Shown: positions 10,079 to 38,830, counted from the first letter of the stretch. The stretch is 64,000 bases of DNA from Chlorokybus atmophyticus (GCA_009103225.1 RHPI01002503.1:256931-320930), one strand, 5' to 3'. A program made the numbers and translations. Notes: a model not told the origin generated them from the letters alone.

Positions 10079-11099
10079 GGGGGACGCTATAGGGTTGAGG
10101 GGACTGTGACGAGGGCAGCACAGTCATCGTCCAGCAACGTCATCTGCCTCCGATGACGTATTCAAGCTGACCACTGACTCAACGGCATTGAGTCATTGGC
10201 ATTGACGCGCTTGGGTCGCGCTGGTAATAGCAACCTGTAGATGACTGCCGAGCAGTGGCGCTGTTTCGGCTGTTGACCATGTTTAATGACGCAGTAACTA
10301 TAGCGTGTATTCAATTAGCATTAAATGGTAGAGTGGATAGTTTGAACAAGGGTGAGTAGTGGCGGTATGTCTTTGGGGTATAGGGCATGCCAAAAACGCG
10401 GCCGTTTTAACCACTAACTGTGCTGCAATTGCACCGAATCCCTAGCGATTTTGGGTCGCCGTTGGTAAGCAGTTGCCGCTGAGATAGTTTTCAGCATCTT
10501 TTACGCATCCCTGCAATGATTGGCCATTTCGCTGCCTTTTTCAGCAACGGCTGTTGTCACCGTTGCGATACCATTAGATCAATCTCAAGCGTGACCAAAT
10601 GGTGGCTTAACAATGCGATATTTCGTTTGATTGAATCTTAACGTAAAGGTGATTTAGCTTAGCATCATCTTGATGGTTGTAACCTCGGCATTACTTATTG
10701 AATATCGTAGCACGTATCGTGGCGTGAACGTTACGTTGATTACTAAGTTCCTTAAACCTTAAAACACTTCACTGCAGGTTGCTAACCATATTGCACCATA
10801 TTGCACCATATGTATTCATATCGCAACATATTGCAACACACCAAAGATATTGTGCATGTAGATTTGCATCAGTGCACGCCCTAATTGCTGGACTGTGCCG
10901 AGATGGTTCTTTTGGATGGCGACAAATGCCAGGGCGGTTGATATGTTCCAGTTGGTATCAGGGTTAGGGTTAGCAACAACTTTCGTCATCCGCTATGACT
11001 TACGAGCAACACTGCGATTTGTCTCAGCATTGCGAATTGTGGGACGCCTGCGATGATATGCTTTCCTGTTGGTAAGATGCACAACGAAAGTTTGTCACA

Positions 11100-13280: not shown

Positions 13281-13950
13281 TGTGACGGTGCTCGTGCCTT
13301 GCTACCTGTGAGTTGGTCCAATCCACAACCCTCTCACCAAGGCACAGTATTCACACCGGAACCTTGTCCCCTCTGCCAAGCACACACACGCGCCCCGCCA
13401 CTCGTGTACGCATGCGCATGCGCTCGAAGCTACACACTGACTTGTGTAGCGCCTTGGATCGTCACACAAGCAAGCACACACCAGTGGCCACACGCTAGCA
13501 ACCCCTGCTAACCACCACCAAGCTTGCACACCAGAAACTAGGGAGCTAAAGGTTGTATTGCAAATTGTAGAATGTCACTATACCTACCAGTCTGCACATG
13601 CTACTGTCTAGACGATTCTAGCGCTAGACGAATCTAGAAGCTAAGATATATATTGCAGAATCTTGTAGTACACTTCTAGACCTTTCCAACGCACCAAAGA
13701 TCTCCTAATTTGCTGCTCATATGGTCAAGTTATACTACTTGGCGCCAGGCCCTTCCAGAAATCTGGTCGAGCCCTTCTCGACTGGCCCTCCGTTTTCTGG
13801 CACCTTCCGGACTGGTCTTGGGGCCCCGGTCGATATCCGCGGCAGACTCATAACTCGCCGATATCCGCCACAAGTCATAAAAAACATGTACCTTACAAAT
13901 AAGGCCTAAAACGGCCATGAAAATCACAAAATTTGGCCTTGACTGTTACA
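13281..13950 (-). repeat. Element A 3' LTR (670 bp)
   Basis: Near-identical to 24558-25057 plus 37001-37174; TG...CA ends. Confidence 0.95.
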
Positions 13951-13963
13951 CTCCTCCCCCCCC
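13951..13963 (-). promoter_or_regulatory. Element A polypurine tract
   Basis: Minus strand GGGGGGGGAGGAG abuts the LTR. Confidence 0.85.
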
Positions 13964-16604: not shown

Positions 16605-16822
16605 CTAGTTGACGCGACGATCACGGCGAGGGTTGCCATCCAGTGTTGGCCTTTGCGTGCTTCGTTTGGGACATCCGTATGCCAAATGCTCCGTTGACCC
16701 ACAGGCATAACACTTGCGCACACCTTTACCTCTTTCACCACGTCCACCGTGCTTCGCCTCAATTCCATGCGTGTGTATGGCACCCACCTCCATTGGTGCA
16801 GGCCCAGAGTCAGCTCCACCTC
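16605..16822 (-). pseudogene. gag: Element A gag C-terminus with zinc knuckle
   Basis: CYACGSTEHLAYGC (CCHC). Rejoins 23699 as ...TLANGG|GADSGPAPMEV... when element B is removed. Confidence 0.88.
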
Positions 16823-17159
16823 TGTAACAGTGTGCTACCTCCATGGAGGTTCCCCGCCCTTATTTAGGATTAAATAAGGGTCCCAACGGGATTATACAGC
16901 CTATTAAGCCATATTAGGGCCGTTAACTTATGTTAAGGCCCTAATGTAGTGTTACTTATCTGTAACACTGATATCGACATGAGACATGAGTCTCATGTCG
17001 ATATCAGCCGCATGGCGGCGCTGCTAACGCAGCGACCGCCATAGCCAGGGGATCTTCTGCTTCGGCACTTCCCCGTGGCGGCGGCGGCGTGGGCGTGGTG
17101 GCTGGTGGTGGTGTTGGGGTAGGGGATTAAAGGGAGGAGGGAGGCACCCCTCTCTTACA
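16823..17159 (+). repeat. Element B 5' LTR (337 bp, hairpin-rich)
   Basis: Matches 23350-23693. Confidence 0.95.
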
Positions 17160-17172: not shown

Positions 17173-17329
17173 GCGGGCGGCGAGGGGCTTGTGGGAGAGG
17201 CGGCGGCAGGCGGCAGCGACTGCGGCGGCAGGCGGCAGCACTAACCAGCGGCGGCAGGCGGCAGCGACTGCGGCGGCGGCAACTAGCAGCCGCTACCCAC
17301 TAGGGTGGGTAGTGGTAGTTGTTAGCTAG

Positions 17330-17361
<32 letters not shown>

Positions 17362-18062
17362 ATAATAGTTATAATTGCTGCTGGTGCTTAGCCTAGCTTA
17401 GCCTGGTTTTGCTTGCCTTGCCCTGCCTTGCCTAGCCAGGCTTGTTAGCTTGCGTGAAGGGGAGGCGGCCACTTAGGCAGCCCCCCCCCCCCAGCATTGC
17501 ATGCTCAGCACATCACTTGTAATCACATTATAATGTGATAACATACTGTGCTCGTGCTTATGTGCTTGCCACCACGTGGATTCGTGGTGGTGTAAAGGGT
17601 GTGAAATTGTATCACAAGTCCAACCCTTGTGAGGCAGTCCGGTGGCAACATCGGCTGCCGTTACCGCCAGTCAGTGCGGTGAGGCCGCCAGAGTCACTCT
17701 GTGCGGCCGATATCAAACTCACAACTCACAACTCGCTGATATCGGCCTGTAGGGTTGATTCAACGAGATTTTTGCACCCTGTGTGTCAATTACAATTGTG
17801 GGTTGAGCTGAGTTGTACAAAGTGAAAACTTTGACAAGTTGTAACTTGTGAACCGCCGCGTGGATTCGCGTGCGGTTTGTTTTAACTTGAGTGTCTAGTT
17901 GAAAGGTGTGTGGAGAGCTCTTGTTTGAGCTGAATACTCCACGTTAAGCACTTGAAACTTGACGAGACAAAATCTATGGATTTTGACACTTTTGCAGTGC
18001 ACAACTTGGGTGTTTTGTGCACTTGCACACTTCTACTATTGACGGCTTGTATTCTTGGGCAG

Positions 18063-21000
18063 ATGTCTTACCAAGGAGGGGATGATGTGGAGAAGTCCAC
18101 ATCATATGAGCCATCGAGTGAAGAGGAAGTGAACTACTCTGATACGAGTGAAAGCTATAAGCTTACTGACAGTGAGAAGGAAGGAGCTAAGCAAGACATC
18201 GAAGCTTCTCCCAACCAGTCTTCTCAGAGTGCACCAGTGGACACTCACAGTGTCATTGGCGGGGCCATTGAGAAGTATGCAGAAGAGCGTAAAGCTCTGC
18301 TTGCTGCCCACCCTCGGCTTCGTTAGGAAACGTGGGAAGCATGGGCGCAGACGGTTCGTGATGGCTATGAGACAAACTTTGCCACACTCCCTCGTGCAAC
18401 CAAGGAGATAATGATCCGCATGCTCGAACATGAGCTGACGAACAACATCCCGCCACTCGTGCGAGGTGATCCAAAGGTGGCAGCTATCATGGCCGTATAC
18501 GATAAGCCGCTCCCTTACCAAGGCAAGTGAATGGCGTTTGAGGCTTTGGCCAACTTGGGAGTGGAAACCTCACAGCGTTGCAAGGATGTGTTCTGGTACT
18601 TGGGACCTAACTTGGAAGACAAGTTGACTGGCCGAGTGCAGTTGACGGCACGCCTCGATGCCATGCAGGCTGAGTTGGTGGCGCTGCGCCAACAGGTGGC
18701 AGGTGCTACTTCGGCAGCTGGGGCATCAGCAGGTCTGCCGGTGACAGCTCTGAACAAGCCTGAGAAGTTCAAGCCTAACGGCAGCGTCAGCATTCATGAC
18801 TGGGTGGTCACTGTCGAGAACTACTTGACGGCACTCAAGCGCTCGGTTAATGAGCACATTGCTGTTGCTGAGTTGCTCATGCCATCCGATGCTCTCGCCG
18901 AATGGGCAAGGCAGACAGAAGATGGTGCTGCCAAGACAGTGGAGGCACTTTTCCAGTTCCTGATGGAACGCTATGATGGCATGGACCCGGCTACTCAGGC
19001 TCGCAACAAGCTCAGCAAGTTGCGCCAGAATGGTCGGGCGGCCTCAACCTATCTGCAGGATTTTTAGGCATTGGTGGGTCGTGCGAACAGCGGCCTCATG
19101 CCCATGGACAAGGCCGAGCAGTTTGAGTTGTACAAGCGCGGCTTGGATGCGCGTGTGCGTGATCAGCTGCAGTACAACACAGCAACGGGACTTCCTTGGG
19201 TTCCAGAGGACTTGGCCAAGCTGCAGAAGCTGAGCGTGTACCTGTACAATGATGACACGACGGTGCAAGACAAGTCACATGTGGCAGTTTCGGCCAAGCC
19301 GCCGGGGGTGGGAGGAAAGCGTTTCTCTCATCCGAGTGCACACCTGGCAAAGAAGGCGAAGACATTTGGTGCTTCTACCAGTGGCGCACCTGCTGGTGGT
19401 AGCATGCCACATCGCAAAGAACTGCCCAACTAAGGGGAAGGGCAAGGGCAAGAAGGTCGAATAGGATTACGCCGTGACTGATGTAGGAGTGGTTGATAAC
19501 CAGTTGCTTGTACTAGTGGCAAACTGGTTTGATGAGCTGTCCCAAGTGCATGTAATGACGCATGCATGGCAAGCACATAACAAATTGCCACTTTTTGATG
19601 TTGAAAAGGTGGAAGAGAATGCTTGTGTGTTGGTACATGTGGAGTTTAACATGCTTACCGATGTGTTGCACACTTTGACCAAGTTGCAAAGTAAGCACAG
19701 AACCTTAAGTGTGGTAGTGATGGTGCCTAAATATCATGGCCCATGGTTAAAACACACTCGAGGGGGAACTGTGTTGAAGCAATTTAGCAAGCGTGAAACT
19801 GGGACAATGCGATTGTCAGCAATTTTACTCAACCCTCGCATTAGTCACGGACTCTTGGCAACATTTCAAGGACGGGTAGTACCTCTGTTGTGGACATTCA
19901 GTGGCACAATGGAAAGGGTAAATAGTTCGTTCTTGATTGACACTGGTGCAACACACAATTTCGTTGAGAACAATGGGTTGTGCGCAACAAGATAGCGTGT
20001 AAACCCTCTGCATTTTCAGCTGCCGGTGCGGGGGGTGCGTTGCCAGTGAAAGGGGAAATACAAATGAAAATAAAGATTGGTAATTATCATGCCACTCTTA
20101 CTTTCATAGTGGTATCCATCGACATATCAGGTGTTGATGTGGTATTAGGACAGGTATGGCAGGAGAATGTCAAAATGACATTGGATACTGGGGCACGCTT
20201 GTGCACATTAAAGAAAGGTCGTAAGCGTGTAACATTGTCTGTGAAAGGGTCACATAGCTCGAACCACAAGCAGCCCGACCCAGCGCTACTCACTGCACTG
20301 CAAGTGAAACGTGCGTTGCGCAAAAACACACCGGCTCCTCTGGTACACTTGACGTCGTCGGACAACTTTGTGCCGGGAAATACAGAAGGTGTTGCAGACA
20401 TCATTGAGAAATATCAAGATGTGTTCTCAGATGAGTTGCCAGGCTTACCTCCTGATCGAGGTGTCAGACACACAATACCACTTATTCCTGATAGTGAGCC
20501 TCCGTTTCGGCCTATATATAGGCTGAGCCCCCAAGAAAGGGAAGAAATGGAAACTCAAATCAAAGAGTTATTGGAAAAGGGATTAATTGAACCCAGTTCT
20601 TCACCCTTTGGCGCGCCCATCTTGTTTGTGATGAAAAAGAATGGAAAGCTGCGCATGTGTGTGGATTACCGTGCTTTGAACAAGATCACGGTAAAGAATC
20701 GATACCCGTTGCCCCGGATTGATGATGTGTTTGATAAACTGTCGGGAAATGCGTACTTTAGTACGTTGGACTTGACAAGTGGGTATCATCAAATCCGGAT
20801 TCATCCTTCTGATGTTTACAAAACAGCATTTAGAACACCTTCAGGCCAGTATCATTACAAAGTGTTACCTTTTGGATTGACTAATGCGCCTGCAGTGTTT
20901 CAGAAGGAATGAATAAGATTTTTGGTGGCATACTTGGCAAGTATGTTATGGTTTACTTGGATGACATCATTGTCTTTAGTGAAACCAAGGAAGAGCATAA

Positions 21001-23227
21001 GCCGCACTTGAAAACAGTGTTCGCCTTGCTGCGTACACATCGCTTGTTTGCCAACTTGTCAAAGTCTGACTTTTGCAAGACAGAGTTGCCATTCTTAAGG
21101 CATATTGTGAGTGGTGCGGGTGTAAAACCTGACCCTCGCAAAGTGCAAATGGTAAAAGATTGGCCTCAACCTAAGAATATCCATCAATTGCGATCATTCT
21201 TGGGGTTGGCAAACTACTTTCGCAAGTTTATGATGGGGTACTCTACAGTTGTGGTGCCTTTGACAAAACTATTACGAAAAGATGCCCCATTCTCTTGGAC
21301 AGCAACACAAGAAGCTGCTATGCAACAAGTGAAGCTGGCTTTGACTTCGGCACCAGTATTGGCATTGCCAAATTGGGATAAACACTTCACTGTGATTTGC
21401 GATGCCTCCACCCTTGGGTGTGGTGCAGTATTGCTACAGGATGGCCGACCATGTGCTTATGAGAGTAGGAAATTCATCCCAGCAGAGGTGAACTACACTA
21501 CCACTGAGCAAGAATTGCTTGGTATAGTGCATGCTCTTGAAACATGGTGATGTTATGGAGGGAGTTTAGTTCACAGTGGTGACTGATCACAACCCGTTGG
21601 CGTACTTCTCAACACAGCTAAACTTGTCGCGTAGGCAGGCTCGCTGGAATAAGTTCTTGTCGCGATTTACCTTTGAATGGGTATACCGGCCGGGCAAGAC
21701 TAATGTGGCAGATCCTCTGAGTCGCTGTCCGTCATTGTTGGCAGTTATGCATGCGCAGTTGCTTGCAACGCAGGGTTCATTGCCTCTTAATGATGAGTTT
21801 GTGCAAGCTGTTTTACAGGGGTATGCATTAGACCCATGGTTCTCTGTACAACAGAATGTACAACAGCTTGACAAACGAGACAACTTGTATTATACGCCAG
21901 CTTGGTGATACCTGACCATGCTGGGTTGCGCATAAAATGCATAGCTGAAGTACACGATCCACCGTATGCTTGGCACTTTGGCGGTCGCAAGACTACTAAT
22001 GCAGCGCAACAGTTGTACTGGTGGTGGTCATCGTAGCCTGTTGACGTGAAGCATTATGTTGACGCGTGTGACAAATGTCAGCGTGACAAGCCGTTACGTC
22101 AGAAACCCGCTGGGTTGCTGCGACTTTTGCCTGTTCCTGATGGCAAGTGGGAAAGTGTGAGTATGGACTTAAATACTGAGCTCCCAGAGACAGCATTAGG
22201 GCACACTGCGGTTGCAGTTTTTGTGAAACGTTTAACAAAAATGGTTCACATTGTCCCTTGCCGCACGAAAATAGGCTCCCGTAAATTAGCGATGATTTTT
22301 GTCGCCTCTGTGTTTAAGTTACATGGCTTGCCTCGTAACTTCGTGTCTGATCGCGATCCGCGATTTGTAGCTCAGTTCTAGAAGTCGCTATGCAGCTTCT
22401 TATATATTCAGCAGAATATGAGCACAGCTTACCATCCATAGACGGATGGTCAGACAGAGCGCGCCAATCAAGTGTTTGAGGAAACCATCCGGCATTATGT
22501 CAGTCCAAACCAATCTGATTGGGATGTTTATCTCCCAATGGCTGAGTTCGCGATTAACAATGCATGGCAAGAGAGTGTGCAGGAAATTCCATTTTTCTTA
22601 AATTATGGAGTGCATCCACTAAGTCCTGCAAACACTACATTGCCCGCTACCGACATAACTCGCGTACTCGCAGCGCGCGAGATGGCTTCGGCCATGCAGG
22701 ATAGGTTAGCGTTGGCAAAGGACTGTTTGCGCGCAGCGCAGGACAGACAAAAAGCCCATGCTGATGCGCATCGCAGAGAGGCCAACTACGATGTGGGCTG
22801 TTCGGTGCTTCTCAGCACCAAAAACATATCCATCAAGGGAGTGGGTACCCGCAAGTTTTTCCCTCGCTGGATAGGCCCGTTTAAAGTGATTGATCGGGTC
22901 GGCACTCACGCGTATCGTTTGGACTTGCCAAAATCGATACGTATTCACAATGTGTTTCATGTGAGTGTACTTAAACCGTACCGTTTTAACGGTCGGGTTC
23001 AACCTCCTCCACCCCCCGTTGCAGTGGATGGCGACGATACTTTTGAGTATGAAGTGAAAGCAATCCTGAGTCATCGTAAGCCTCGACGCGGACGCGCGCC
23101 GTCTTACTTGGTAAAATGGAAAGGGTATGGTGTTGAACACAATACATGGGAGCCCGAAAGGAATCTTACCAACTGCCAGGAGATTCTTCGGGGGTACTGG
23201 AGTACTGTGTCCACACGCGGACGGTAA
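18063..23227 (+). pseudogene. Element B gag-pol (Gag, extra domain, protease, RT, RNase H, integrase, chromodomain) with many stops and frameshifts
   Basis: KPEKFKPNGSVSIHDWV (gag), FLIDTGATHNFV (protease), YLDD, ICDAS, integrase core SDRDPRF, chromodomain YEVKAIL...YLVKWKGYG...TWEP. In-frame stops at 18324, 18528 and 19065. Confidence 0.92.
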
Positions 23228-23698: not shown

Positions 23699-24490
23699 CA
23701 TTAGCAAGTGTTAAACTTGGTTCTCCTCGTCTCCATGCATGTTGAAAGCCTCCCCGGGGCTGATCACCATGCCTTTGCCTCCAGTCAGTGTTTCTTGTGG
23801 TGGACTTAAAGTACAACGCGTCGAGACGCTCCGCGATGCTTATAGCCTCCGCGAGTGTCTTCAAGTCCCGTAGCTCCACTTCTTTACGGCCCCAAGGTTT
23901 TAACCCACGTGTATACCTGTCCAGCTGCTCCTCCTCGGTCATATTGGGTATGGACATCACCAATCACTGAAACGCGGCCGTGTACGCCATCACCGACCCC
24001 ATTTGCACAAGGGCTGCAAGTTTGCGCGTGCGGCCTTCACGCTCTCAACGCGAACATATTGATGCCTGACCTCCAGTGCCAACTCTTCCATGGTGGTCAA
24101 TGGTAGCGCCAACCCGTTTGCAACACGCGTACATCGATGCCTCCACCACACAAGTGCCGCACCTTCAAGCAATGTCGCTGCAACCTCCACATGCAGATGC
24201 GTGGGCACCTCCGTGAGCTTCAACCAAGACGATACCTGAAAAATCCATTCATCCACTGCATCTCCATCACGTTGACCCCTGAATGGCTTGGGCTTTGGCA
24301 CCTTCACATGCATGCGCGAGCTTGATGCCATGGGAATTTGTACACGCGCCATCGCATGCTCATACGCCTCGCGTTGTGCTTGTGCCGCCGCTTGCGTGTG
24401 ATGAAGCTCTTCTCTTAATGCTAAGATGGCAGCTTGAAGCTCTTCCATGCGAGCATCCTCCATCTCCACTAACACACTGCACTCCGCTTC
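23699..24490 (-). pseudogene. gag: Element A gag, N-terminal and capsid part (frameshifted)
   Basis: VPKPKPFRGQRDGDAVDEWIFQV...LLEGAALVWW; ...EEEQLDRYTRGLKP...KTLAEAISIAERLD. Confidence 0.88.
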
Positions 24491-24543
24491 CAAATGAAAA
24501 TTGTAAACGCCCACACACTTCCGCTCTCACCTTCGTAAACCGC

Positions 24544-24555
24544 GCTCCGATACCA
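24544..24555 (-). promoter_or_regulatory. Element A primer-binding site (tRNA-iMet)
   Basis: Minus strand TGGTATCGGAGC, 2 nt from the LTR end. Confidence 0.85.
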
Positions 24556-24557
24556 GT

Positions 24558-25057
24558 TGTGACGGTGCTTGTGCCTTGCTACCTGTGAGTTGGTCCAATC
24601 CACAACCCTCTCACCAAGGCACAGTATTCACACCGGAACCTTGTCCCCTCTGCCAAGCACACACACGCGCCTCGCCACTCGCGTACGCACGCGCATGCGC
24701 TCGAAGCTACACACCGACTTGTGTAGCGCCTTGGATCGTCACACAAACAAGCACACACCAGTGGCCATACGCTAGCAACCCCTGCTAACCACCACCAAGC
24801 TTGCACACCAGAAACTAGGGAGCTAAAGGTTGTATTGCAAATTGTAGAATGTCACTTTATACCTACCAGTCTGCACATGCTACTGTCTAGACCATTCTAG
24901 CGCTAGACGGAACTAGAAGCTAAGATGTATATTGCAGAACCTTGTAGTACACTTCTAGACCTTTCCAACGCACCAAAGATCTCCTAAACCTTGCTGCTCA
25001 TATGGTCAAGTTATACTACTTGGCGCCAGGCCCTTCCAAAAATCTGGTCGAGCCCTT
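24558..25057 (-). repeat. Element A 5' LTR, part left of the element C insertion
   Basis: Matches 13281-~13777; resumes at 37001. Confidence 0.94.
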
Positions 25058-25661
25058 TGTCATGCCTATCGCCCCGGCATGCCAGTCGTCATCGGGCATG
25101 CCTACAGCGAGACCCTCACCCGGCTTACCAGCATGGCAACCCGCGTGCGCCTCTGACCAGTAGCTAGGTCATGTCCCTAGAGTAGTTCGTGACCATAGCC
25201 TGCATAGGCACCGCGCGTAGCTGTGCAGTTGTGAGTTCAGTTATAAGTCCGGTTCTATATCGAGGGGGCATTTCCTGTGGAAATAGCCTCGATATGACCG
25301 TTAGCTTATGTTCCGGACATTCATGAGTTGACTTGTATAAGTAAGCACAGTGTTCACCGGATCAGCTGGTGACACTGTAAGTGAGAAAGCTAAGAGCTTG
25401 TGAAGCGACTTGAACTACGAACACACCGTCCTGGTTCCCAAGAATCCCCTCACCGTGTGAGAGCCTGTGCATGTTCTTGTGCACTGTGCTTGTTCTTGCT
25501 GTGAGCTTTGTGTACTTGGTCGCGGTGTGCTTGTTGGCATCAGTCAGGGCATAGCATCCACGTGTTGCTTGCTCATTCACCTCACTTAACAGTGTAATCC
25601 CTCTCCCACTCACGCAAAGAACTGTGTAAACAGCACTACCTATAGTAGTGGCTTGTTGACT
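25058..25661 (+). repeat. Element C repeat A1 (604 bp)
   Basis: Near-identical to 35329-35932 and 36164-36767. TATA-like TATAAG at 25336. Confidence 0.95.
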
Positions 25662-25673
25662 TACAGTGTCACC
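25659..25673 (+). promoter_or_regulatory. Putative self-priming primer-binding site of element C
   Basis: ACTTACAGTGTCACC is the exact reverse complement of GGTGACACTGTAAGT at 25368-25382. No TGG-type tRNA PBS is present. Confidence 0.7.
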
Positions 25674-28600
25674 CTCTTTGCTCAAGTGAGTGTAGTTGCA
25701 AGCTGTACATCAGCATCGCAATCTGAAGTTGTACACATCACAGTGCAGTGTTGTCACCGTCATCGCATAGCGCGCACAAGTGCTAGTGTGTTGGGTGATA
25801 GCAGCGCTGGAGATCCCATTGTAGAACACAAACACTCTACCCTTCATTCCACTTTCACCATCGCACCAGCTGTATGAGCAGGCCCACCCCGTTCTCCCCA
25901 ATAGACGAGGGTGACCTCAGCAGTTGGAGCCCAACCACCAACCTCACCTACGAGCGGACCAGTGACGGGAGCATCGACCGCAGCAGCAGAGTCTCGCGCT
26001 CCATCTCCGGCTTCACCCCGCTTCACTCTACTCCTCGTCATCAAGCTTCTCCACTATCATCGGACAGCGACGACAACGAGATGGAGTCTTCCAGTTCAAC
26101 CACATCCCTGCGCTTCTCCGGACGTGCCGGCACCACCTCGCTGGATGAGTTCATCATCAAGTTCCACTCCAAGATGCGGCAGCAAGCTCTGAAGAACAAA
26201 GACTGGTCAGATGAGATCTCTTTCCACATTGCTGCTCAGTATCTTGATTATGAAGCACACGATGTCTGGAAGTCCGTTGCTGAACTGCATCGAGTAGACG
26301 GCTATGGCGAGCTTGCCAGCACCATAGCATCTGCATCGCTGCACCGTCCAACAGGTGTCGTTCCACCTGCCACTTCAGTTGCAGTAACAGGCTTGTCCAT
26401 AGCTGCAGCTCTCAAGCAGGCAGAGGAGGAGGAACCGGAGTTGGTACTTATCAACTTGACCCCTGCAGAAGTTGAGTCCAAGGAGGCCACACGTCGAGTC
26501 CGCATCCTTGATCGTTCTGCCGTCATCATTGAGGAACAAAGAGCTGCACAGCCAGCGGCAGCCGCAGAGTGGGGTACTCCTCTACCTCCGGCAACACCTG
26601 GCTCTCGTGCGGGAGGCAGTACCTTCACCCTCGGGTCAGTAGCACTGCGCGCACCAGCCATCTCTGTAGGTGCAGCCATCTCTGATTCGCCACTCAAGGA
26701 CCTGTACGCTGCCCTGCGCCGCACCTTCCCTCCTCAGACCACCAGCAAGGTTGAGGAGCTGAGACGCTTCCGACGCAAGCCCAATGAGGATCCCCTCCGC
26801 TTGTACTCCAGACTGGAAGGTCTGCTGAAGGACACTGACTACAGGATTGTCACTGAGGAGGCTGCTGCAGTGATATACGTCAATGAGTTGGATGCTGCTC
26901 AAAGCGAGTCGACACGCCTGACTCTGAACTACAGCAGGCCCCTTGGCTACACCCTCAAGGAAGCTTTCGAGACTGCACAAGCCATTCATAAGCGCGCAGT
27001 GTATGAGAAAGCGGTGCTGGACACCAACCGCAGTGCCTCACGGCCTATGGCAGGCACAAGTGCAGAGCCTCTTCGGCGGGACCGCAGCCGGGAGTCGCAA
27101 GGCATCCATTACAAGGATAAACGGTCAGCTCATGCTGCCCTTGTGGCTCCAGTGCTGTGCCACCGGTGTGGTCGACATGGCCACTACCAAAAGGAGTGCA
27201 CCGAAGATTACGGCAACCTTGTGTGCGACCACTGCCACAAGACGGGACACTTGGAGACAGTATGCTGGCTCAAGTTCCCTGAGCTGCGGCCCCCTATTGG
27301 CTACAACAACAGCAACAACGCTGTTGGCTACCGCGGCCACAACAACCACAACAACAACGGGGGCTACAACAACAGCAACCATGCTGGCGGCCACAACAAC
27401 AGCAACAACGCTGGTGGTCGCAACAACGGCAACAACGCTGGTGGCCACAACCCCAACAACAACAGCAACGCTAACGCCCGCAAGGAAGAAGCTGGCTATA
27501 GGGGGAAAAACCGCCCTCCACAGCACAAAGGACTTGAGGGACGTCCTCGCGCTGGAGCTGCTGCTGTCAAGGCACCAACCAATCCACCGGATATCGACCA
27601 AGTGGCAGCCCTGATGGCGCGCGTGGCATAGCTGGAGGAAAACAAGGAGCATGACTATCAAGCCTGCTATGCTGCTAGGTGGGCATTGATGGCACCAAAA
27701 CGGGACAGGGACACTCCCACGCCGTCACGCGTACAACCATCCAGACGGGCGCGCAGGGAGGCTGGCGCGTCGTCAACAGCGGCATTGTCGGACGCCACAA
27801 GTGGTGCTGCCTCGGCAGCCACAACCACCGCTGGGACGACGCCGTCGACGACACCGTCGGCATCCACACCGACTACGACAGCAGGTGTCAACACTCTTGG
27901 CACCACGCTGTTCCCAGTGACGGAGAGCACCCACGCCGCAGCAACCATGGTCGTTGGGTTCGTAAGTGGTGAATCCACCACTCCTGCCTCCATCGGAGCG
28001 ACCACATCAACCGTACCTGCTGCCACCCTCACAGCTGCCACTTCAGTGACGACGACTGCGGCAGGTGCCACCACCATCGCCTCCAGTAGTGCTGCCATGC
28101 CCACCGCACCACTTCCTGAAAGCTGGACGGCACCGCCACCAGCATTGGACGTCACACAACAAGTGCCACGCGGGCCGCAAGCAGAACGCGCCTGGGCATC
28201 GATTCTACGCAACGTGGAGCCCACCACTATTGCGTACGGACCAGGGGGGCAACGCACCACGCGCGTGGCACGCGATGATCGCATCTTGCCCCTACCACCG
28301 CCAGAATACCACACGCTGCCGGAACCCACACAACAGCAGCTGGAGGATGAAATCCTCGCCGGCACTGCACCAGAGATGAGGGATCGTCTGTTCGGGGTCA
28401 CCTATCGCCGACCTGCGGTGTTGGAACTGGCCATCCAGTTGTTCATGGCATTACATGCACAGTTGCAGGACGCACCCAGTCAATCGCGACAGCCCATGCC
28501 CGCTCAACGGATCGACTTCGAGCCTTCGACACTGGACCCACTCGGCCTCCGGCGACAAAAACACCAAGACCTCGTGGTCACGATGTCTGACATAGCGCTG

Positions 28601-30763
28601 GGCGCTGATCCCGCTCTCCGGGGGCTCACTCCAGGCAGTCGTCAAGAGCGTTTCTCTGCACTCGAACAGGCCCATCGGTATCGCATGGACCAAGCTGCCC
28701 AAGTGGACGCGCGCCGACAAGCATACGAAGCAGCACACGCCGTTATCGTGCCAACCGTAGCACCAGCACATGTTGCCAGCGCCTCCACGGCGCCGACCAC
28801 AGCACACGCCACGGCGCTCGCCATCGAACAGGCGGGACACGCAACTGTTGCAGACCAAGCGAGGGCGTTGGCGCAACAATTGAGGGGAGTAATCGCCCCG
28901 CTGCTGCCTCCTTTGGTCGAAGACATGCCTGAGGATCAACGCGATGCAGGGCGAGGGTACCTCACCTCGCAAGGGGACACCACACAACGAGGAGGAGCTG
29001 GTATGGTGGGGGAGCAACAACTCCGTACCGCACTCATCCGGCAAGCAGTCATGTTGCACAGGCCTGAGGGCAACACATTAAGACAGATGATGGGGATGCA
29101 AGAGGGCAGCGCCGCGCGAGCTCGTCTCGTGACATGGCTCGTTGCCAATCACCCTGCTGTCCCCCTGTTTGCCTTTGGCAACCGAGCATCATGGTTGGGG
29201 GCATTCGTTCGTTCGCTGCGACAAGCATACGACGAGGCTGCCACCACAGCCCCGGACACGCTGGAGGGAGTGCAAGAGGCAATGCTGCGGCTGCCAGGGG
29301 TGGAAGCCGCACGGCAACGGCGGCGCATCGCCATTGCTCATGAGCTACACGCACAGCAGACTGACCTCCAGCGCACCCTACGCGCTCGCGCCATGACCGT
29401 GCTCGATGTGGGAGTGGTACAAGGAAGGTGGGATGCCTACATGGCAGGGATCTTGCGAGTCCCCACCATCACTCACGACATGCGGCGACAGCTACTACGC
29501 GCCGTATACCTGCAGCCCATGCCTCAATATCATCATTGGACCGACACGGACACCGAGCCCACGGCCACGTGGGAGGGGACATTGGTCAGAGAAGCGGCTC
29601 ATGCTGTGCGATGGACGTACGCCGCGGAGCAAGCTGAACGCGAGGCAGGCCCACAAACACCGGGTCCGCCGGGGTTTCCTCCACAGCCATTGGGTACACC
29701 CGCGGGCATGATTCCATCTTCGCAGAGGCGGCATCCACCTGCGCCGCCACCACAACCAGCGCCGGAACCTCCAGCACCGAGGCCCCCCCGTGTCTACCAA
29801 CCACCACGACAAGGTCGGTTCGGCAGAGGGAGAGGGCAAGGAGGGGGTTCTCCGGACCCAGCAGGCAGAGGAGCTCTGGCTGCCATGCGCTCAGCATCTC
29901 CAGCTGAGGCAATTGAGTCAGAGGAACAGACACCTCGCATGAAGAGGCTGCGTATCGACGCCAACGCTGCCATGGTGGCCAACCAAGGCAAGCACGTTAC
30001 CATCAACGGTCTGGCACCCAAGCGGGTAATGTTGGACACCGGAGCACAGCCTGTCATCATCGGGCGCTTCCTCGCGCGGTCCCTAGGCATAACCAGTTCC
30101 GACTTGGTGCCTTGCCCGTACGTGTTGGACACTGCCACAGGTAGCCGAGATAAGGTGATGGGAGTCACCAGGGAGGCCTTTTGCATTCGGTTGACAGGGC
30201 TGGACCCAACCCACACGACCGAGATCGTCCAGCAATGTGTGGTCACCAATGCCGGCTCCTTCGACTTTCTGCTTGGGCAGGATTTCAACTTCCCTGTGGG
30301 CATGGGCCTCGACTGCTGGACAGAACGAGTGTGGTTTCGGCCACATTGGGATGAGGACGACGGAGAGGTACAGGGCTTCCTGCCTCTCGAGTTGGTCTCG
30401 CGCACGCGCGCCCAACGCAAAGTGGCTGCCATGGCCACACGCAGACACGCCCGCACCCGGAAGGCTGTAATGGCCATATACGACGGTGCTCGGACGCAAG
30501 TCGCTGCTGGTGCCACAACCCCGTGTCAAACCGGCGACCCCTCTCCCATCCCGTACAACGAGGAGCAGGAGGATGCCACCGTGGAAGTAGCATTACAAGA
30601 CCCAGCTGAACGGCGCTGGCGCGCACAGGTGGACGCACACATCTTGCTCAGCCACCCACTGATCACCACGCGCTTCCCCAACTACCGAAGCCACGTCAAG
30701 GTGCAGGACCACCATATGGTGGCCACCGGAGTGGTGGAATTCCACACCTTTCGCAGGCAACAG

Positions 30764-31740
30764 GGCATTACAGTGTTGGAGCTGTTTGGAAGCATTGGCA
30801 GTGGTCTTGCTGCAATCCTCTACACGGGCGTGAAGGTTACCAAATACTATTACTGCGACCCAGACCCACACGCGTAAACGGGCCTCAAGCACCACCTACG
30901 CCAACTGCACACCAGGTATCCACGGCAACTACCCCTCTCGGCGTTGCAAGGCAGCCTCAAAGCGTTGCCACAGGACATCCGGCTGATCACTGAAGATCAC
31001 CTACTGTCCCTCGGCAACGTCGACCTGTTAATAGCTGGATGGGAATGCCAAGGGCACTCCAGGGCAGGCAAGGGACAAGGCCTCGATAACCCTCGCTCCA
31101 GATTGTTCTGGGAGCTGATGAGGATCATCCACCTCCTGCAACACCACCAGATCTCCAAACCCCTGGGGTACGTCATCGAAAATGTGCATTCAGAAGACGA
31201 CAAGCGTCCGCACGTGGCCTCCAGCTACCGACAAGTTTGCTCCATTTTGGGGCACCCACTCAAGGTGAACGCGGCACGACATGGCTCGCGCGCACATCGT
31301 GTACGTGCCAAATGGACGAACTTGGCCACCGTGGAGGAGCTCATGACCGCCGAATACACGCGCAGCGCCCGGCCGCGCAACCTGCTGGTCGACGACATCC
31401 TTGACCCCGGCCGCACAGCACAACCTGTCCTGCATCATGACCACCACCATTTCTACCAGTGCAATCAGCCTGGTCAGCCCCGTCGCGCACTCCCCACATT
31501 GGTGTCCTACCCGGGCTCCTACGCCTTTCGGAACAATGGTGACGGGATGGTATTTGATGCGGCCACCAACACGCTGGAAGAACCCAACGCACGCGAACGT
31601 GAACGCGCCATGGGATTCTTCCCCAACAGCATCACAGGTTCATCGCTGACGGACAATCAGCAATGCCAGCTGCTTGGGCGCGCCATGGACCAGAACAGCA
31701 TGGTATGGCTGCTGGAGCTGAGCTTCGCGTTGCAGGACCG
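30764..31740 (+). CDS. C5 cytosine-DNA methyltransferase domain within the element C polyprotein, between protease and RT
   Basis: Motif I VLELFGSIGSG; IV DLLIAGWECQGHS (catalytic Cys); VI YVIENV; VIII HRVRAKWTNL; IX ERERAMGF; X LLGRAMD. Confidence 0.88.
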
Positions 31741-34700
31741 CCACGTGTCCTTCGAGGATCTCGAACACTTGGCTGGGGGGTGGGCTGATCGCGTAGCCGA
31801 CACCAAGGCAGCTCACACAGCTCTCGAGGTGGTCCACATGGAGGAGCAAGCGGCAGTGACAGTGGAGGACATTCCTGTGGTTGCCAATGCAACCTCCTGG
31901 GACCATGCCATTTGCATTGGCCCGGTGGCCACGGAAGACACTCGAGAGAAGCTGGAGGCTCTCCTCGATAAATGGAGGAGCCAATTCAGCTTCAATGTGA
32001 AGGAATTGGGTACATGTTCGGTGTACCAGATGAACATCGAGCTAGTGGACACTGAGCCGGTGTTCCGGCGACAATACAGGCTCTCCAAGTTGGAAGAAGA
32101 CTTGGTGGAACAGAGATGTAAGGCACTGCTGGATGCAGGCCTTATCGAAGAGTCCACATCGGACTTCGCAGCAGCAACCGTCATGCCCCTGAAGAAGGAT
32201 TCAGCGGGCAACTGGACAGAGCGACGCATGTGTGGCGACTACCGTCCCCTCAACAACAAGACCAAGCAAGACCGGTACCCCATGCCCACAGCAGAGGGTA
32301 TTTTTGATGATGTAGGAGACTGCACAGTCTTCAGCATCCTGGACATGCGTCAGGGGTACAACCAGATCGCCATCAAGGACGAGGACAAACACAAGACCTC
32401 CTTCTGGGGCAACCGCCAGTTGTACCAATGGAAGGTAATGCCGTTCGGGCTGAAGAATGCCCCCGCCAAGTTTCAACGCGTCATGGACAAGGCCTTGAAG
32501 GGGTTGGACTGCGCGCGGTGCTACATCGATGACATCCTCATCTTCAGCCGCAGCAACGAGGAGCATCTTCAGCACATCGAAGCGGTGCTGGAACGACTCA
32601 AGGGAGTGGGGATGACCGTACACCCCGACAAGTGTACCTTCTTCACCCACAAGGTGCCGTACTTAGGGCACATGATTGTGCCCCATGGTGTGTATGTGCA
32701 GCAGGCAAAAGTAGAGGCTCTGGCAGCTATCCCTGCCCCGACAGACCTCACGCGCCTGCGCGCTTTCTTGGGACTTGCCAACTATTATCGCCGATTCGTG
32801 AAGGACTTCGCGAAGATCGCAAGGCCCCTCAACGAGCTACTGAAAAAGGAGGTGGAGTTCGCGTGGAAGGAGCCGCAACAGCAGGCCTTCGAGGAGCTGA
32901 AGAGCAGACTCACCAGCGCTCCCATCCTTCAACGTCCGGACTACGCCAAGCCTTTCATCCTTCACACCGACTGGAGCAAGCTGGGGATGGGAGCGGTGCT
33001 GGTGCAGCACGATGAGAACAAGAAGGAGCGGGTGGTGTCATACGCCAGCCGAAGCAACAACAGCGCCGAGGCCAACTACAGCAGCTACGAAGGGGAGTGC
33101 CTCGCTGCAGTGTGGGCCATCTCCTTCTTCCGACCTTTCCTCTTTGGTCGACAGTTCCAACTGATCACCGATCATCAGCCCCTCAAGTGGCTGATGACCA
33201 ACCAACATCTGACAGGGAAACTTGCTCGATGGGCCCTGCTGTTACAGGAATACGACTTCGAGATTGACCACCGCGCTGGCCTCACCAACCAAGACGCCGA
33301 TGGCCTCAGTCGCAACCCCCACCTCAGCACCAACGACGCAACTGGAGCGCGGCATGAGCTCATCCCAGCAGCAACAGTTCCCACCATGGCAGCCATGTTT
33401 GCTGCTGCCGCGTTGCGCTCAGGGCGCAAGACCAACACCTCAACCTCAGCAGTGGTAGAGGAGATTCCTGCCCTTGAGTCTACCGACCCTGCGGCAATCA
33501 CACCCTTGGGAGACGCCCACGCCGCCGACGTTGACGTCGATGACACAGAGCCGGCGTCCACTGACACCAGGCAGGACATATGGCACGACAAGCCATCACT
33601 CTCCTTTCTTCAACGTGGCCATCTCCCCTCTGGCATGAGCGCTCGAGAGAAGGACCGGGTCAACCAACGCACCCGTCACTATCGCTGGGCAGGTGACAAG
33701 CTGTATCGCCGCTTCCACGGCGAAGACAAGGAAGTGCCGACACCAGTCACGCGCAAGGACATCATCGCTTCCCTCCACACTGAGCTTGGACACTTTGGTG
33801 TCAAGCGCACAGTCAGTCTAGTGAGAGCACAGTATTGGTGGTATGGATTAACAAAACAGGTGCAAAGGTTCGTCAGTCACTGCCAGCAGTGTGACATGGT
33901 GCGCGCCAGCCTCAACACGCGTAGCGCCACCTTGCACCCACTCCCCATCTCCGGTCTCTTTTACCGATGGGGACTCGACATCTTGGGGGACTTGGCACCC
34001 TCAGCACGTGGCAACCGTTACATATTGGTCATGATTGAGTACTTCTCCAAATGGGTGGAGCTGGTGCCATTACCCGACAAGAGCAGCAGGGGGGTGTCTC
34101 AAGCCTTCCTCTCTTACGTTGTCAGCCGCTTTGGCAGCTGCGCCGAGGTCATCACCGACCAAGGTACTGAGTTCAGAGGGGAATTCGACACCCTCTTGGA
34201 CAAATGTTACATCGACCACCGCCGTACCTCGCGTGATCACCCTCAAGCCGACGGCCTCGCCGAGCGGACGGTACAGACCATCAAGAAGGCACTCCGCAAA
34301 TACGTGTTGGAGTACAAGAAGGACACTTGGGATGACCACCTACCATGGGTGGCCCTTGGGTATCGGTTGTCAAAACAGGCAGCTCTGAGGGAGTACAGCC
34401 CGTACTACCTGTTGTTTGGGCGGCCACCATTGCTCCCCTTCCGTGCGCAACAGGAGGTGGATCGCGTCGTGAACAACCTCGACGACCCTGACTGGATGCA
34501 CCACGACATCACCACGCGCGCCGCACTTTTCGAGCGCACCGTCCCCATGGCCTTCAACAATCTGCGCATCGCGCAGCATCGCGACACGCTGCGCTACGAG
34601 CGCGTACGTAGCGGCTTTTACAAGGAGCGCCAACGGCGATTCCAAGCGGGGGAACCTTGCCTATCGCATGGCAGCCACCAAAGACACACTTGACACCTCC

Positions 34701-34874
34701 GTAAGCCGCACCGTCTACAAGGTACTCAAAGTGTACCCCACAGGGGTGCTGGACCTCCTTGGTCAAAACGGAGAAAGGTTGAAGGACAACATGGTGAACT
34801 GTGCGCCATGTCACCTCCCTTACGTAGCTGGCTTCGGGCGTATCCAGCACCCTCGTCCTGCGCGCAGCACCCGC

Positions 34875-35015
34875 TGTGAACACTGCGGCAGCGCCGGCGA
34901 CGACGCACTTATGATGCTCTGCGATGGCTGCAACAAAGGCCTGCATTGCTACTGCCTGGAGCCACCTTTGGACACGATACCTATGGAAGAATATTGGTGC
35001 GACGACTGCCGTACC
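34875..35015 (+). CDS. PHD finger at the integrase C-terminus of element C
   Basis: CEHCGSAGDDALMMLCDGCNKGLHCYCLEPPLDTIPMEEYWCDDC, a C4HC3 pattern. Confidence 0.92.
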
Positions 35016-35076
35016 AACGGCCCTCCTCACTTGCGCTAGCAGCTGAGCTCTGGAGCTGGAACCTTCCCCAGAGCCC

Positions 35077-35084
35077 AGGGGGGG
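35077..35084 (+). promoter_or_regulatory. Putative polypurine tract of element C
   Basis: AGGGGGGG directly before repeat B1, about 40 bp after the pol stop. Confidence 0.6.
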
Positions 35085-36996
35085 TGGCTTGTTGACTCTG
35101 TATGCTACGGCACAGCATGTTCTTAGGGAAAACACCGACTCCATCTGCCCGTACTACCCAGCAGCAGCACCCCAGCTGCACGAAGCACTTGTCACCATGA
35201 GGGTGGAGGTCATCTTTCTGTTCTTGCTACGCGTCACCCAGGTGGCGCAGCAGCATGTCCAGCACAGTATGGCTGTCCATGCAGCTGTCCGAGACAGCGT
35301 GACCCTCGACTCCCCTCGACCCGACAGCTGTCATGCCTATCGCCCAAGCATGCCAGTCGTCATCGGGCATGCCTACAGCGAGACCCTCGCCCGGCTTACC
35401 AGCATGGCAACCCGCGCGCGCCTCTGACCAGTAGCTAGGTCATGTCCCTAGAGTAGTTCGTGACCATAGCCTGCATAGGCACCGCGCGTAGCTGTGCAGT
35501 TGTGAGTTCAGTTATAAGTCCGGTTCTATATCGAGTGGGCATTTCCTGTGGAAATAGCCTCGATATGACCGTTAGCTTATGTTCTGGACAGTCATGAGTT
35601 GACTTGTATAAGTAGGCACAGTGTTCACCGGATCAGCTGGTGACACTGTAAGTGAGAAAGCTAAGAGCTTGTGAAGCGACTTGAACTACGAACACACCGT
35701 CCTGGTTCCCAAGAATCCCCTCACCGTGTGAGAGCCTGTGCATGTTCTTGTGCACTGTGCTTGTTCTTGCTGTGAGCTTTGTGTACTTGGTCGCGGTGTG
35801 CTTGTTGGCATCAGTCAGGGCATAGCATCCACGTGTTGCTTGCTCATTCACCTCACTTAACAGTGTAATCCCTCTCCCACTCACGCAAAGAACTGTGTAA
35901 ACAGCACTACCTATAGTAGTGGCTTGTTGACTTTGTATGCTACAACACAACATGTTCTTAGGGAAAACACCGACTCCATCTGCCTGTACTACCCAGCAGC
36001 AGCACCCCAGCTGCACGAAGCACTTGTTACCATGAGGGGGGAGGTCATCTTTCTGTTCTTGCTACGCGTCACCCAGGTGGCGCAGCAGCATGTCCAGCAC
36101 AATATGGCTGTCCATGCAGCTGTCCGAGACAGCGTGACCCTCGACTCCCCTCGACCCGACAGCTGTCATGCCTATCGCCCCAGCATGCCAGTCGTCATCG
36201 GGCATGCCTACAGCGAGACCCTCGCCCGGCTTACCAGCATGGCAACCCGCGTGCGCCTCTGACCAGTAGCTAGGTCATGTCCCTAGAGTAGTTCGTGACC
36301 ATAGCCTGCATAGGCACCGCGCGTAGCTGTGCAGTTGTGAATTCAGTTATAAGTCCGGTTCTATATCGAGGGGGCATTTCCTGTGGAAATAGCCTCGATA
36401 TGACCGTTAGCTTATGTTCTGGACGGTCATGAGTTGGCTTGTATAAGTAAGCACAGTGTTCACCGGATCAGCTGGTGACACTGTAAGTGAGAAAGCTAAG
36501 AGCTTGTGAAGCGACTTGAACTACGAACACACCGTCCTGGTTCCCAAGAATCCCCTCACCGTGTGAGAGCCTGTGCATGTTCTTGTGCACTGTGCTTGTT
36601 CTTGCTGTGAGCTTTGTGTACTTGGTCGCGGTGTGCTTGTTGGCATCAGTCAGGGCATAGCATCCACGTGTTGCTTGCTCATTCACCTCACTTAACAGTG
36701 TAATCCCTCTCCCACTCACGCAAAGAACTGTGTAAACAGCACTACCTATAGTAGTGGCTTGTTGACTTTGTATGCTACAACACAACATGTTCTTAGGGAA
36801 AACACCGACTCCATCTGCCTGTACTACCCAGCAGCAGCACCCCAGCTGCACGAAGCACTTGTCACCATGAGGGGGGAGGTCATCTTTCTGTTCTTGCTAC
36901 GCGTCACCCAGGTGGCGCAGCAGCATGTCCAGCACAATATGGCTGTCCATGCAGCTGTCCAAGACAGCGTGACCCTCGACTCCCCTCGACCCGACA
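35085..36996 (+). repeat. Element C 3' repeat array B1-A2-B2-A3-B3 (period 835 bp)
   Basis: B (242 bp): 35085-35326, 35920-36161, 36755-36996. A (604 bp): 35329-35932, 36164-36767. B|A joints read CCGACA-GC-TGTCATG; A|B joints overlap in TGGCTTGTTGACT. Confidence 0.95.
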
Positions 36997-37000
36997 CCTT

Positions 37001-37174
37001 CTCGACTGGCCCTTCGTTTTCTGGCACCTTCCGGACTGGTCTTGGGGCCCCGGTCGATATCCGCGGTTGACTCATAACTCGCCGATATCCGCCACAAGTC
37101 ATTAAAAACATGTACCTTCCAAATAAGGCCTAAAACAGCCATGAAAATCACAAAATTTGGCCTTGACTGTTACA
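37001..37174 (-). repeat. Element A 5' LTR, remaining part
   Basis: Matches ~13778-13950. Confidence 0.94.
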
Positions 37175-37179
37175 GCATT

Positions 37180-38830
37180 TGTGTATCAGTTAGCTGTCCC
37201 GCGCATCATCACATTTACGGATTACCACCTGTACACAACATTGAGGGGTTTTGTTTCAATTTACTTCTTCAGCGGGTTACTTTTCGTTCTGAAGTTGATT
37301 TGATTTCTTTGAACAACCAATCACGCACTTACTATGAAGAATGTGTGTTGCGGTATTCTATTAACAACACAAACCGCGGTTTGCTGACACATGTCACGCG
37401 CTATGCCGAACGTCATGTATACAATGATGTTAAGATTTACCATATGATGAACGCCATAATGCAGACCACTGATAATGCTATTAATGCCTTGTCTATGGCT
37501 GCAGCTGGTGCGACAGACAGCCAAACTGCACCAGAACCTTCCACGCAATATCCAACAGCAACATCATCCAATCCTGCATCTCCAGCTTCAACTGTGACAA
37601 CGGACTCAGATGTATCAGCGCCGATGTTTCAAGGTACTTTGAAAGTTGAGGAGTTTGCGTTTGCGAACAATTTCTCTTTGACCAGCCAGCAAGAATGCAC
37701 CGCAAGTAGTATCATTGCAGCACCGGTTGGTCTACATGTAATATCTGGTTGTCCAGGAGCAGGCGAAACATTTTTGTCCAAATTTATCACTCACAAGTTG
37801 CGCGTTGCTGGGATACCTGTATTACTCAGTGCTACAACTGGCGCTGCGGCTCTGCGGCTTTGCGGCTTAGCTCATCTGCTTCAACTATACATTCCAACTT
37901 CGCAATACCTGTCGATGGTCAGCAACTCCGGTTTGTAACTGCTATGGATGATGCTTACAAATTGTTACATCATTGTCGAGTGTTTATTATTGACGAGTTT
38001 TCCATGATGACATCGCGGTTGTTTGACTTGGTGATGCTGCGCTTACAGCACGTTCATGGATCAGAATTTCTACAAACATCGGCATTGTATTGGTTTGTGA
38101 CCACAAGCAACTGCCATCAGTTTGTGGACACAAAGTCCAAGACACATCGCAGGTTTGCCACAAATGCCATATTTTTGCATCACAGAGGTGGCCATTACGT
38201 AGGCAACATTTTCTCTGTTTCAGTGCGTCATGCTTCAGACCCTCTATTTGCTCAATTCTTGATTTAGATTCGTTCTGGCATACCCAGTTCAACAGAGATA
38301 GCAGATGCGTTAGGTTGCTGTCTGGTCTCTTCGGAGTACTTATAGCAGGTACCAAGTGATGCAACCATATTGTGTTCACATGTACAAGACACACTAGCTT
38401 TCAATAGCATGATTGTAAGACAACGTTTGGCAGTTGATGCCATTGTGCCAATACATATTACTTCTAATGCAGTGAACGTGCCCGAACTGTACGACTGGAT
38501 TCACAAGCGCAAGTTCAACTTATCTTTAGTTGCCAAGGGAGCAAAGGTGTTGGTTTTAGAAAACGTTTCACTGCAAGATGGTGTAGCCAATGGGTCTTTG
38601 GGAACAGTGACGCAGTTCAGATACTACAAAGGTAATGTGAGCAGTATACAAGTTACATCTGATCACTTAGCAGAATCCATGTGGATGCGCCGAACAATAC
38701 AGCAAACAACAACGTCTCAAGGCAAAACGTACTACTTTATTATCCACATGCAAAAAGCTTTTGCTCTCGGATTGTAGTATGTGGCGTTGTCGTGTGTGAC
38801 AAACAGGGCCTATTTGGTACGGTTGACGCG
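37180..38830 (+). pseudogene. Helitron RepHel, linker and Pif1 helicase portion
   Basis: GCPGAGET (decayed Walker A), LSATTGAAA, STIHSNFAIP, FIIDEFSM, GAKVLVLENVSLQDGVANGSLG, YVALS. Frameshifts and stops. Confidence 0.9.

Follow-up and report, generated by a model that had tools for sequence, protein, structure and literature searches.

Split, permuted terminal repeats in a methyltransferase-bearing Ty3/gypsy family suggest integration through joined cDNA ends

A stretch of 64,000 nucleotides (nt) from Chlorokybus atmophyticus (GCA_009103225.1 RHPI01002503.1:256931-320930; hereafter the window, with positions counted from its first letter) harbors, at 25058-36996, a Ty3/gypsy element whose terminal repeats are split and permuted. 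Textbook long terminal repeat (LTR) retroelements integrate the free ends of a linear complementary DNA (cDNA), and circles are regarded as by-products. Here, the ends set by reverse transcription and the ends set by integration appear to be different places, not only in the window element but across a clade whose members are about 40-54% identical to it at the protein level. That a DDE integrase inserts the element in permuted form is well supported by the data presented below. The window copy is probably a defective representative of 'Gypsy-DNMT3'-type Ty3/gypsy elements that achieve this by way of joined cDNA ends, the joined molecule presumably being a circle.

Self-BLAST of positions 24000-38500 revealed a single 11,939-bp insertion with the order A-internal-B-A-B-A-B. 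Repeat A (605 bp, 98.7-98.8% identity) is present in three copies, at 25058-25662 (A1), 35329-35933 (A2) and 36164-36768 (A3). Likewise, repeat B (243 bp, 96.7-99.2% identity) occupies 35084-35326 (B1), 35919-36161 (B2) and 36754-36996 (B3), and in the same comparison no B was found upstream of the first A. The element starts with TGTCATGCC at 25058, the left integrase end, and finishes with CCGACA at 36996, the right integrase end; B1 has the same CCGACA ending. These TGTC...GACA termini are bordered on both sides by CCTT (25054-25057 and 36997-37000). The window also contains a paralog of the empty target at 13277-13950, about 96% identical to the flanks, in which 13277-13776 corresponds to the left flank and 13773-13950 to the right one, a single CCTT (13773-13776) being all that these matches have in common. 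Thus, the whole 11.9 kb represents one insertion with a true 4-bp duplication. No further copies of the element were found within the window. All these features, as well as those of the element described below, are on the + strand. An earlier reading of the window, made from the sequence alone (the sequence-only reading), had described the split repeats, the lack of a 5′ B, the CCTT duplication and the TGTC...GACA ends, and both the self-comparison and the empty site confirm this description.

The signals of reverse transcription are found elsewhere in the repeats. A run of seven Gs (35078-35084), the putative polypurine tract that would prime the plus strand, directly abuts the first B. At the end of A1, positions 25659-25673 form a perfect 15-nt complement of positions 25368-25382 (GGTGACACTGTAAGT), the best complement in 200 shuffles being 10 nt. 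The latter segment begins 31 nt past a TATA-like box (25337-25342), a spacing that places the presumed 5′ end of the transcript at 25368. In RNA starting at this position, both segments are paired in the minimum free energy (MFE) and centroid folds (z = -2.6). As far as can be judged from the sequence, these paired segments are the signature of Tf1-type self-priming (for background see PMC6317226), and 25659-25673 would then be the primer-binding site. A TGG following A had resembled a tRNA-type primer site; this candidate was rejected, the conserved signal being the self-complement.

Given a G tract directly before B and a primer site at the end of A, the LTR defined by reverse transcription should read B.GC.A, as part of an ordinary linear cDNA. 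B would contribute the 5′ part of U3, and A its 3′ part together with R and U5. It follows that the integrated ends lie inside this LTR, back to back. At each B|A joint (35323-35332 and again 36158-36167) a 2-nt spacer completes the perfect palindrome GACAGCTGTC, with GACA-GC-TGTC as a candidate site of integrase recognition and cleavage; it resembles the junction of a 2-LTR circle. As A ends with the same 14-15 nt with which B starts, (G)TGGCTTGTTGACT(T), the array has a period of 835 bp; it is by TGGCTTGTTGACT that B2 overlaps the end of A2, forming the A|B joint. The LTR as deduced from these signals both begins and ends with TGGCTTGTTG, 13-14 nt with the first bases of the primer site included. 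The sequence-only reading had correctly placed the purine tract next to B, the primer site next to A and the integrated ends at the B|A joint, inside an LTR of the B+A form; the spacer and the palindrome add detail to this picture. Its estimate of 848 bp for the LTR has to be replaced by the 835-bp period, and the primer site, although properly located, would be of the self-priming rather than the tRNA type.

The coding regions follow the order gag, a region of about 770 residues, protease, C5 cytosine methyltransferase, reverse transcriptase, RNase H, HHCC finger, DDE core and PHD finger; gag and pol share one frame, and the PHD finger is in another. The gag-like open reading frame (ORF; 25874-27631) encodes a CCHC zinc knuckle and terminates at an in-frame stop (27629-27631), which is possibly natural. 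An Asn/Gly-rich repeat with a 27-bp period (GYNNSNN-like) is located at the C-terminal end of gag (27299-27476). The first part of pol (27632-30877), in the frame of gag, comprises the region of about 770 residues, the aspartic protease (~29996-30286) and methyltransferase motif I (LFGSIGSG), just after which a stop (30875-30877) interrupts the methyltransferase domain. The rest of this domain is in the second part of pol (30878-34693), followed by reverse transcriptase (~32219-32677), RNase H (~32864-33253) and an integrase with an HHCC finger (~33749-33907) and a DDE core (~33965-34240), detected as Integrase_H2C2 and rve. The methyltransferase match (PF00145, E = 2e-10) lies downstream of motif I. 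The PHD-finger ORF (34668-35039) differs in frame from the integrase, to which the PHD finger is fused in relatives. With a stop inside the methyltransferase and the PHD finger out of frame, the window copy is defective.

The integrase aligns with that of prototype foamy virus (PFV), with D, D and E conserved at the motif positions, which we take to be PFV D128, D185 and E221, and with the D..D-35-E spacing. Its best PDB matches are PFV integrase and the Ty3 Gag-Pol/intasome chain 7q5b, and homologs of the window pol are gypsy polyproteins. Thus, the element shows the protease-reverse transcriptase-RNase H-integrase order (by Pfam matches), the HHCC/DDE integrase and the TG...CA termini of the Ty3/gypsy class, with a 4-bp duplication within the 4-6 bp typical of that class, and departs from it in having A at the 5′ end and B-A-B-A-B at the 3′ end instead of two complete identical LTRs. 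A profile search of the sense ORFs, the region of about 770 residues (taken here as 788 residues) and six antisense ORFs found no tyrosine recombinase or Phage_integrase domain, although a very divergent enzyme could escape such a search. In the same search the Ala/Thr/Pro-rich region of about 770 residues and the antisense ORFs matched no family. The assignment of a DDE integrase to a Ty3/gypsy element in the sequence-only reading is therefore borne out by both Pfam and the PFV alignment.

To place the window element among its relatives, we considered contigs around the closest proteins and 80 loci from a metagenome scan. The closest proteins, mostly metagenomic, are 47-54% identical to the window element (~40-54% for the relatives that share its layout) and have the same domains, PF00145 included. 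The full A...B-A-B layout is present in the independent loci L001, L006, L008, L024, L031, L033, L040, L045 and L048. L002, L005 (from an NCBI assembly) and L010 display the succession G tract, B, CGACA.GC.TGTC and A up to the contig end; in L002, L003, L004 and L005 the contigs end within the repeats, and only the 3′ half of the layout is readable. L001, for example, consists of A, the internal region, a G8 tract, B, the joint, A and B, starts with TGTCATGCC, ends with CACGACA and is flanked by a GGTC duplication. Perfect 4-bp duplications were found in six copies (the window copy, L001, L006, L008, L033 and L045), their sequences being CCTT, GGTC, TATA, TTTA, ATAA and AACC. In L031 the duplication matches at three of four positions, and in two old copies none was seen.

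The signals of reverse transcription recur as well. A run of six to nine Gs precedes the first B in L001, L002, L005, L006, L010 and moss-type copies. Self-primer complements of 15 nt occur in the window element, L001, L024 and L028. The complement always begins some 30 nt past a TATA box and is paired in the MFE folds; in moss-type copies it begins about 30 nt after TATAAAAGG. Another such copy is L006 (9457-14866), in which the repeats are 100% identical, the duplication is TATA, the B|A joint reads GACA.GC.TGTC and the A|B joint is blunt. This 5.4-kb copy has the end of RNase H followed by the methyltransferase and the integrase, and lacks gag, protease and reverse transcriptase. Judging by its sequence, it is a deletion derivative whose mobilization, evidently in trans, took place very recently. 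Next to A it carries a 76-nt perfect inverted complement (9599-9674 versus 9842-9917), which contains an exact 45-nt self-primer complement. In a tree of reverse transcriptase-RNase H sequences, all six verified split elements fall into one clade of 17 rows (Shimodaira-Hasegawa-like approximate likelihood ratio test, SH-aLRT, 96), and three relatives with ordinary LTRs lie outside it, in what is a quick tree with weak deep nodes. Collectively, these loci show that the permuted layout is a trait of the family. The expectation that other copies would start with TGTCATG, end with CGACA, be flanked by 4-bp duplications and read A...B-A-B was borne out by independent relatives.

Some loci were of little use in this respect. 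The Haematococcus locus L087 is rearranged with inverted duplications, and its layout could not be interpreted; L088 and L089 are cyclic assembly paths with only a doubtful palindrome. The contig ends of L010, L088 and L089 overlap exactly (by 123, 121 and 55 bp), which reflects repeat-caused assembly cycles and was not taken as evidence for circular DNA. Many of the related loci derive from the same few Joint Genome Institute (JGI) samples, and these contigs are probably plant (bryophyte-like) nuclear DNA in host-associated metagenomes. In L001, a PPR-DYW editing-factor gene (17244-18536) adjoins the element.

An indication of how the permuted form arises comes from comparing the two joints over 18 independent copies. 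The B|A palindrome does not vary in length in any of them (0/18), and its changes are transitions only, for the most part in a CHG or CG context. The U5 end, followed by 0-4 nt of the primer site and then the U3 start, makes up the A|B joint, whose length is variable in 10 of the 18 copies, with variants ranging from -3 to +1 nt and including two retained Gs of the primer tract, an extra 19 nt and one of about 130 nt. Aberrant joints are those of L011 (10592-11210), where some 130 nt from the internal region, the G tract among them, separate A from B, and L044 (9145-9165), with the 19-nt insert. Retroviral 2-LTR junctions show the same imprecise behavior. The variable length of one joint and the constancy of the other suggest that the A|B joint is remade at each insertion by imprecise joining of cDNA ends; in other words, these sequences indicate that it is formed anew every time from two such ends. 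B1 and B2 show no fixed, position-specific differences across the 18 copies and are identical in L006, which implies that both are copied from one template in each cycle. The copies themselves are old and star-like in a nearest-neighbor analysis.

How, then, might such an element move? We propose that an ordinary linear cDNA with the LTR B.GC.A is made, and that its outer ends (at U5, with 0-4 nt of the primer site attached, and at the start of U3) are joined, a 2-LTR circle being the simplest form. In the LTR that adjoins the primer site, the DDE integrase would then nick the palindrome behind both of its CAs. This would leave recessed CA-3′OH ends with 2-nt 5′ overhangs, just like normally processed ends, and their insertion with a 4-bp stagger would give A-internal-B-A-B. 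The permuted copy would remain competent for replication because A1 supplies the promoter, R and U5, with the transcript start, and B1-A2 supplies a complete U3-R. The integrases of PFV and human immunodeficiency virus type 1 (HIV-1) cleave a palindromic LTR-LTR junction (PMC1180852, PMC1905944), so the chemistry of palindrome cutting has a precedent. A broader version of this proposal is that the integrase site shifted, clade-wide, from the cDNA termini to an internal palindrome resembling a circle junction, and that joined-end DNA became the obligatory productive intermediate in these streptophyte and green-algal genomes; we give this version an even chance of being correct.

Several observations weigh against our proposal. 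The case is built from integrated copies, the window copy is itself broken, and the transcript start and the poly(A) site are deduced positions. A symmetric 2-LTR circle has two equivalent palindromes, so the mirror product A-B-A-internal-B would be expected as often as A-internal-B-A-B. Yet, all 14 loci with a visible 5′ side carry a single A there, the mirror form being found in 0/14 and A-internal-B-A-B in about 10. The missing mirror product points to a directional step. Possibly, the second strand of the left LTR is completed well before that of the right; alternatively, template switching might produce an open circle, or linear cDNA might be cut and its outer ends joined only after insertion. 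In addition, about 14 independent loci end with internal-B followed by unrelated flank, without A-B; one of them, L070, has the near-duplication AGAT/AGAC. Such copies may come from 1-LTR circles, double cuts or later B/B recombination. Finally, the window A|B joints are not blunt, successive LTRs overlapping by 10-14 nt, and two features of the window repeats are not predicted by a simple LTR model. A1, A2 and A3 are mutually equidistant, with 4, 4 and 3 private substitutions, and B1 has seven private differences from B2 and B3, which are identical to each other; six of the seven are CG or CHG transitions, with the unmutated G/C kept in B1. Microhomology joining, a second cDNA or gene conversion are possible sources of this pattern. 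Unequal crossing-over was rejected as the source of the third unit, A2 and A3 being no closer to each other than either is to A1. The third unit, seen in the window copy only, is a secondary feature.

The circle proposed in the sequence-only reading is thus supported only in part: the A|B joint does look like imprecisely joined cDNA ends, but a closed 2-LTR circle is not required, since cutting linear cDNA and repairing it afterwards gives the same product, and the mirror form is absent. One alternative is such an order of events, with integration first and joining later. The integrase would cut the left-LTR palindrome in linear cDNA and insert the B end and the A start, whereupon host end-joining would ligate the outer cDNA ends, with no circle at any stage. 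The outcome would be the same A-internal-B-A-B, with the 4-bp duplication and an imprecise A|B joint. In standard retroviral plus-strand synthesis the left LTR becomes double-stranded long before the right, and if this applies here, the asymmetry could be explained too. On the other hand, each transposition would pass through a costly chromosome break, the 10-14 nt overlap in the window and the blunt joint of L006 fit joining before integration equally well, and we know of no precedent for this route; all in all, we find it unlikely. The joined intermediate might also be made by the reverse transcriptase itself. In a hepadnavirus-like manner, the plus strand would switch from the 5′ to the 3′ end of the minus strand, recopy B and stop, or be cut, at the first palindrome. 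In the resulting open circle the left palindrome would be the only usable site, which would account for A-internal-B-A-B alone being seen, and the terminal redundancy TGGCTTGTTG of the window LTR (13-14 nt) would guide the switch. But neither L006, with its blunt joint, nor the moss-type copies have such a redundancy, and the +19-nt and ~130-nt joints have the look of aberrant ends that were joined by end-joining, making this a rather improbable course of events.

Two further explanations question the layout itself. If the true LTR were A+B, it would have canonical TG...CA termini, TGTC...GACA. Unusual primers at the B end and A start would then give A-internal-B-A-B cDNA, or else B1 and B2 would be inherited separately from read-through RNA, as proposed for PAT-like elements. 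The seven sites at which B1 differs from B2 and B3 in the window copy might be seen as a sign of such separate inheritance. However, A is not preceded by a purine tract, nor is B followed by a primer complement; the conserved signals flank instead the start of B and the end of A. Moreover, the 18 copies contain no diagnostic sites that would tell B1 from B2, and the exact identity of the two in L006 leads to the same conclusion, so that separate inheritance was rejected. The A+B reading was already disfavored, and we hold it to be very improbable. Least credible of all is a one-off rearrangement or assembly artifact of an ordinary LTR element, a danger that the sequence-only reading had itself raised. 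Tandem repeats are indeed prone to mis-assembly, and the third unit is confined to the window copy. Nevertheless, the layout recurs in independent assemblies and lineages, each time with its own duplication, the three A units carry 3-4 private substitutions each, and an empty-site paralog is present. As far as the A...B-A-B layout is concerned, this explanation is already refuted; the number of units in the window copy, two or three, may be revised by long reads. Integration in permuted form through joined cDNA ends therefore remains the explanation that we favor.

The surroundings of the element are mostly other transposons, the long ORFs being chromovirus and helicase fragments. Chromovirus-type Ty3/gypsy copies with reverse transcriptase, RNase H, integrase, SH3_Tf2-1 and chromodomain are located at 13949-16834 (- strand) and 19968-23224 (+ strand), and the target of the split element is a repeat also present beside the former. 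Right after the insertion, an ORF at 37078-37935 (+ strand) has weak AAA_30 and PIF1-helicase matches and may be a Helitron-like fragment. A perfect tandem array of about 417 bp at 61306-61722 matches itself at 100% in offset steps of 6 bp (its period is thus 6 bp or some divisor of 6). The region 8001-10200 is AT-rich (GC 34%), and within it open frames are present at 9364-10153 in each of the six phases, suggestive of low-complexity sequence free of stops.

If the joined-end route is correct, it has a number of implications. A retroviral-type integrase would be able to use an internal palindrome as its normal substrate, and joined-end (2-LTR circle) DNA, which leads nowhere in retroviruses, would become the productive form. 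The clade would then provide a natural case of the circle-junction model, an older view of integration reportedly due to Panganiban and Temin and since abandoned, as well as a DDE counterpart of the DIRS/PAT strategy. The split-repeat layout would be decoupled from tyrosine recombinases, affecting both the classification and the detection of transposons, as LTR finders would miss or mis-annotate such elements. On the practical side, short defined sites and a recently moved non-autonomous copy would offer a tractable system for studying circle-junction cleavage, which is debated for HIV and foamy viruses.

The layout as such has a precedent, contrary to the sequence-only reading, which knew of none in Ty3/gypsy elements. 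KnitGypsy-Dnmt3 of Klebsormidium nitens was noted in 2018 to combine a DIRS-like repeat structure with a Gypsy domain composition (de Mendoza et al. 2018, PMC5890265, Fig. 4c legend). It resembles the window element in both the cytosine methyltransferase inside a Gypsy pol and the DIRS-like terminal repeats; that study gives no ends, duplications, primer sites or mechanism for it. The name 'streptophyte Gypsy-DNMT3' appears in a 2026 preprint (10.64898/2026.05.21.726589), where the family is merely cited. In the literature searched we found neither later papers using the name KnitGypsy-Dnmt3 nor anything else that combines split direct repeats with a gypsy integrase. Thus, the repeat layout has already been reported, and what appears to be new in that literature is the internal palindrome, the duplications, the self-priming, the variable A|B joint, the spread across the clade and the asymmetry.

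Known systems each share a part of these features. Like Tf1/sushi elements and plant Tcn1, the window element would have a primer site complementary to the presumed start of its own transcript and not to a tRNA. Unlike Tf1/sushi elements, it has a PHD finger instead of a chromodomain, and its clade has a longer self-primer complement, of 15 nt, with an exact match of at least 45 nt in L006. In the reverse transcriptase tree, a quick one with weak deep nodes, the clade is also apart from the chromovirus rows. With PAT-like, Ngaro and DIRS elements it has in common the split direct repeats A1-internal-B1-A2-B2, the permutation that should result when an intermediate, joined or circular, is opened within the repeat. 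DIRS, PAT and Ngaro elements have a tyrosine recombinase, no DDE integrase and no target duplication, whereas the window element combines a DDE/HHCC integrase with TG...CA ends and, like its relatives, 4-bp duplications, and the profile search detected no recombinase in it. The closest parallel to the proposed mechanism is the cleavage of circle junctions by PFV and HIV-1 integrases (Delelis et al. 2005, PMC1180852; 2007, PMC1905944), in which, as we propose here, a DDE integrase nicks after both CAs of a palindrome and generates two processed ends at once. The difference is that the retroviral palindrome arises where the outer LTR ends are ligated, whereas in the window element it lies inside the LTR and the ligation joint, A|B, is elsewhere. 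Furthermore, the circle route is accessory at most in retroviruses, whereas here the permuted product would be the only form that propagates.

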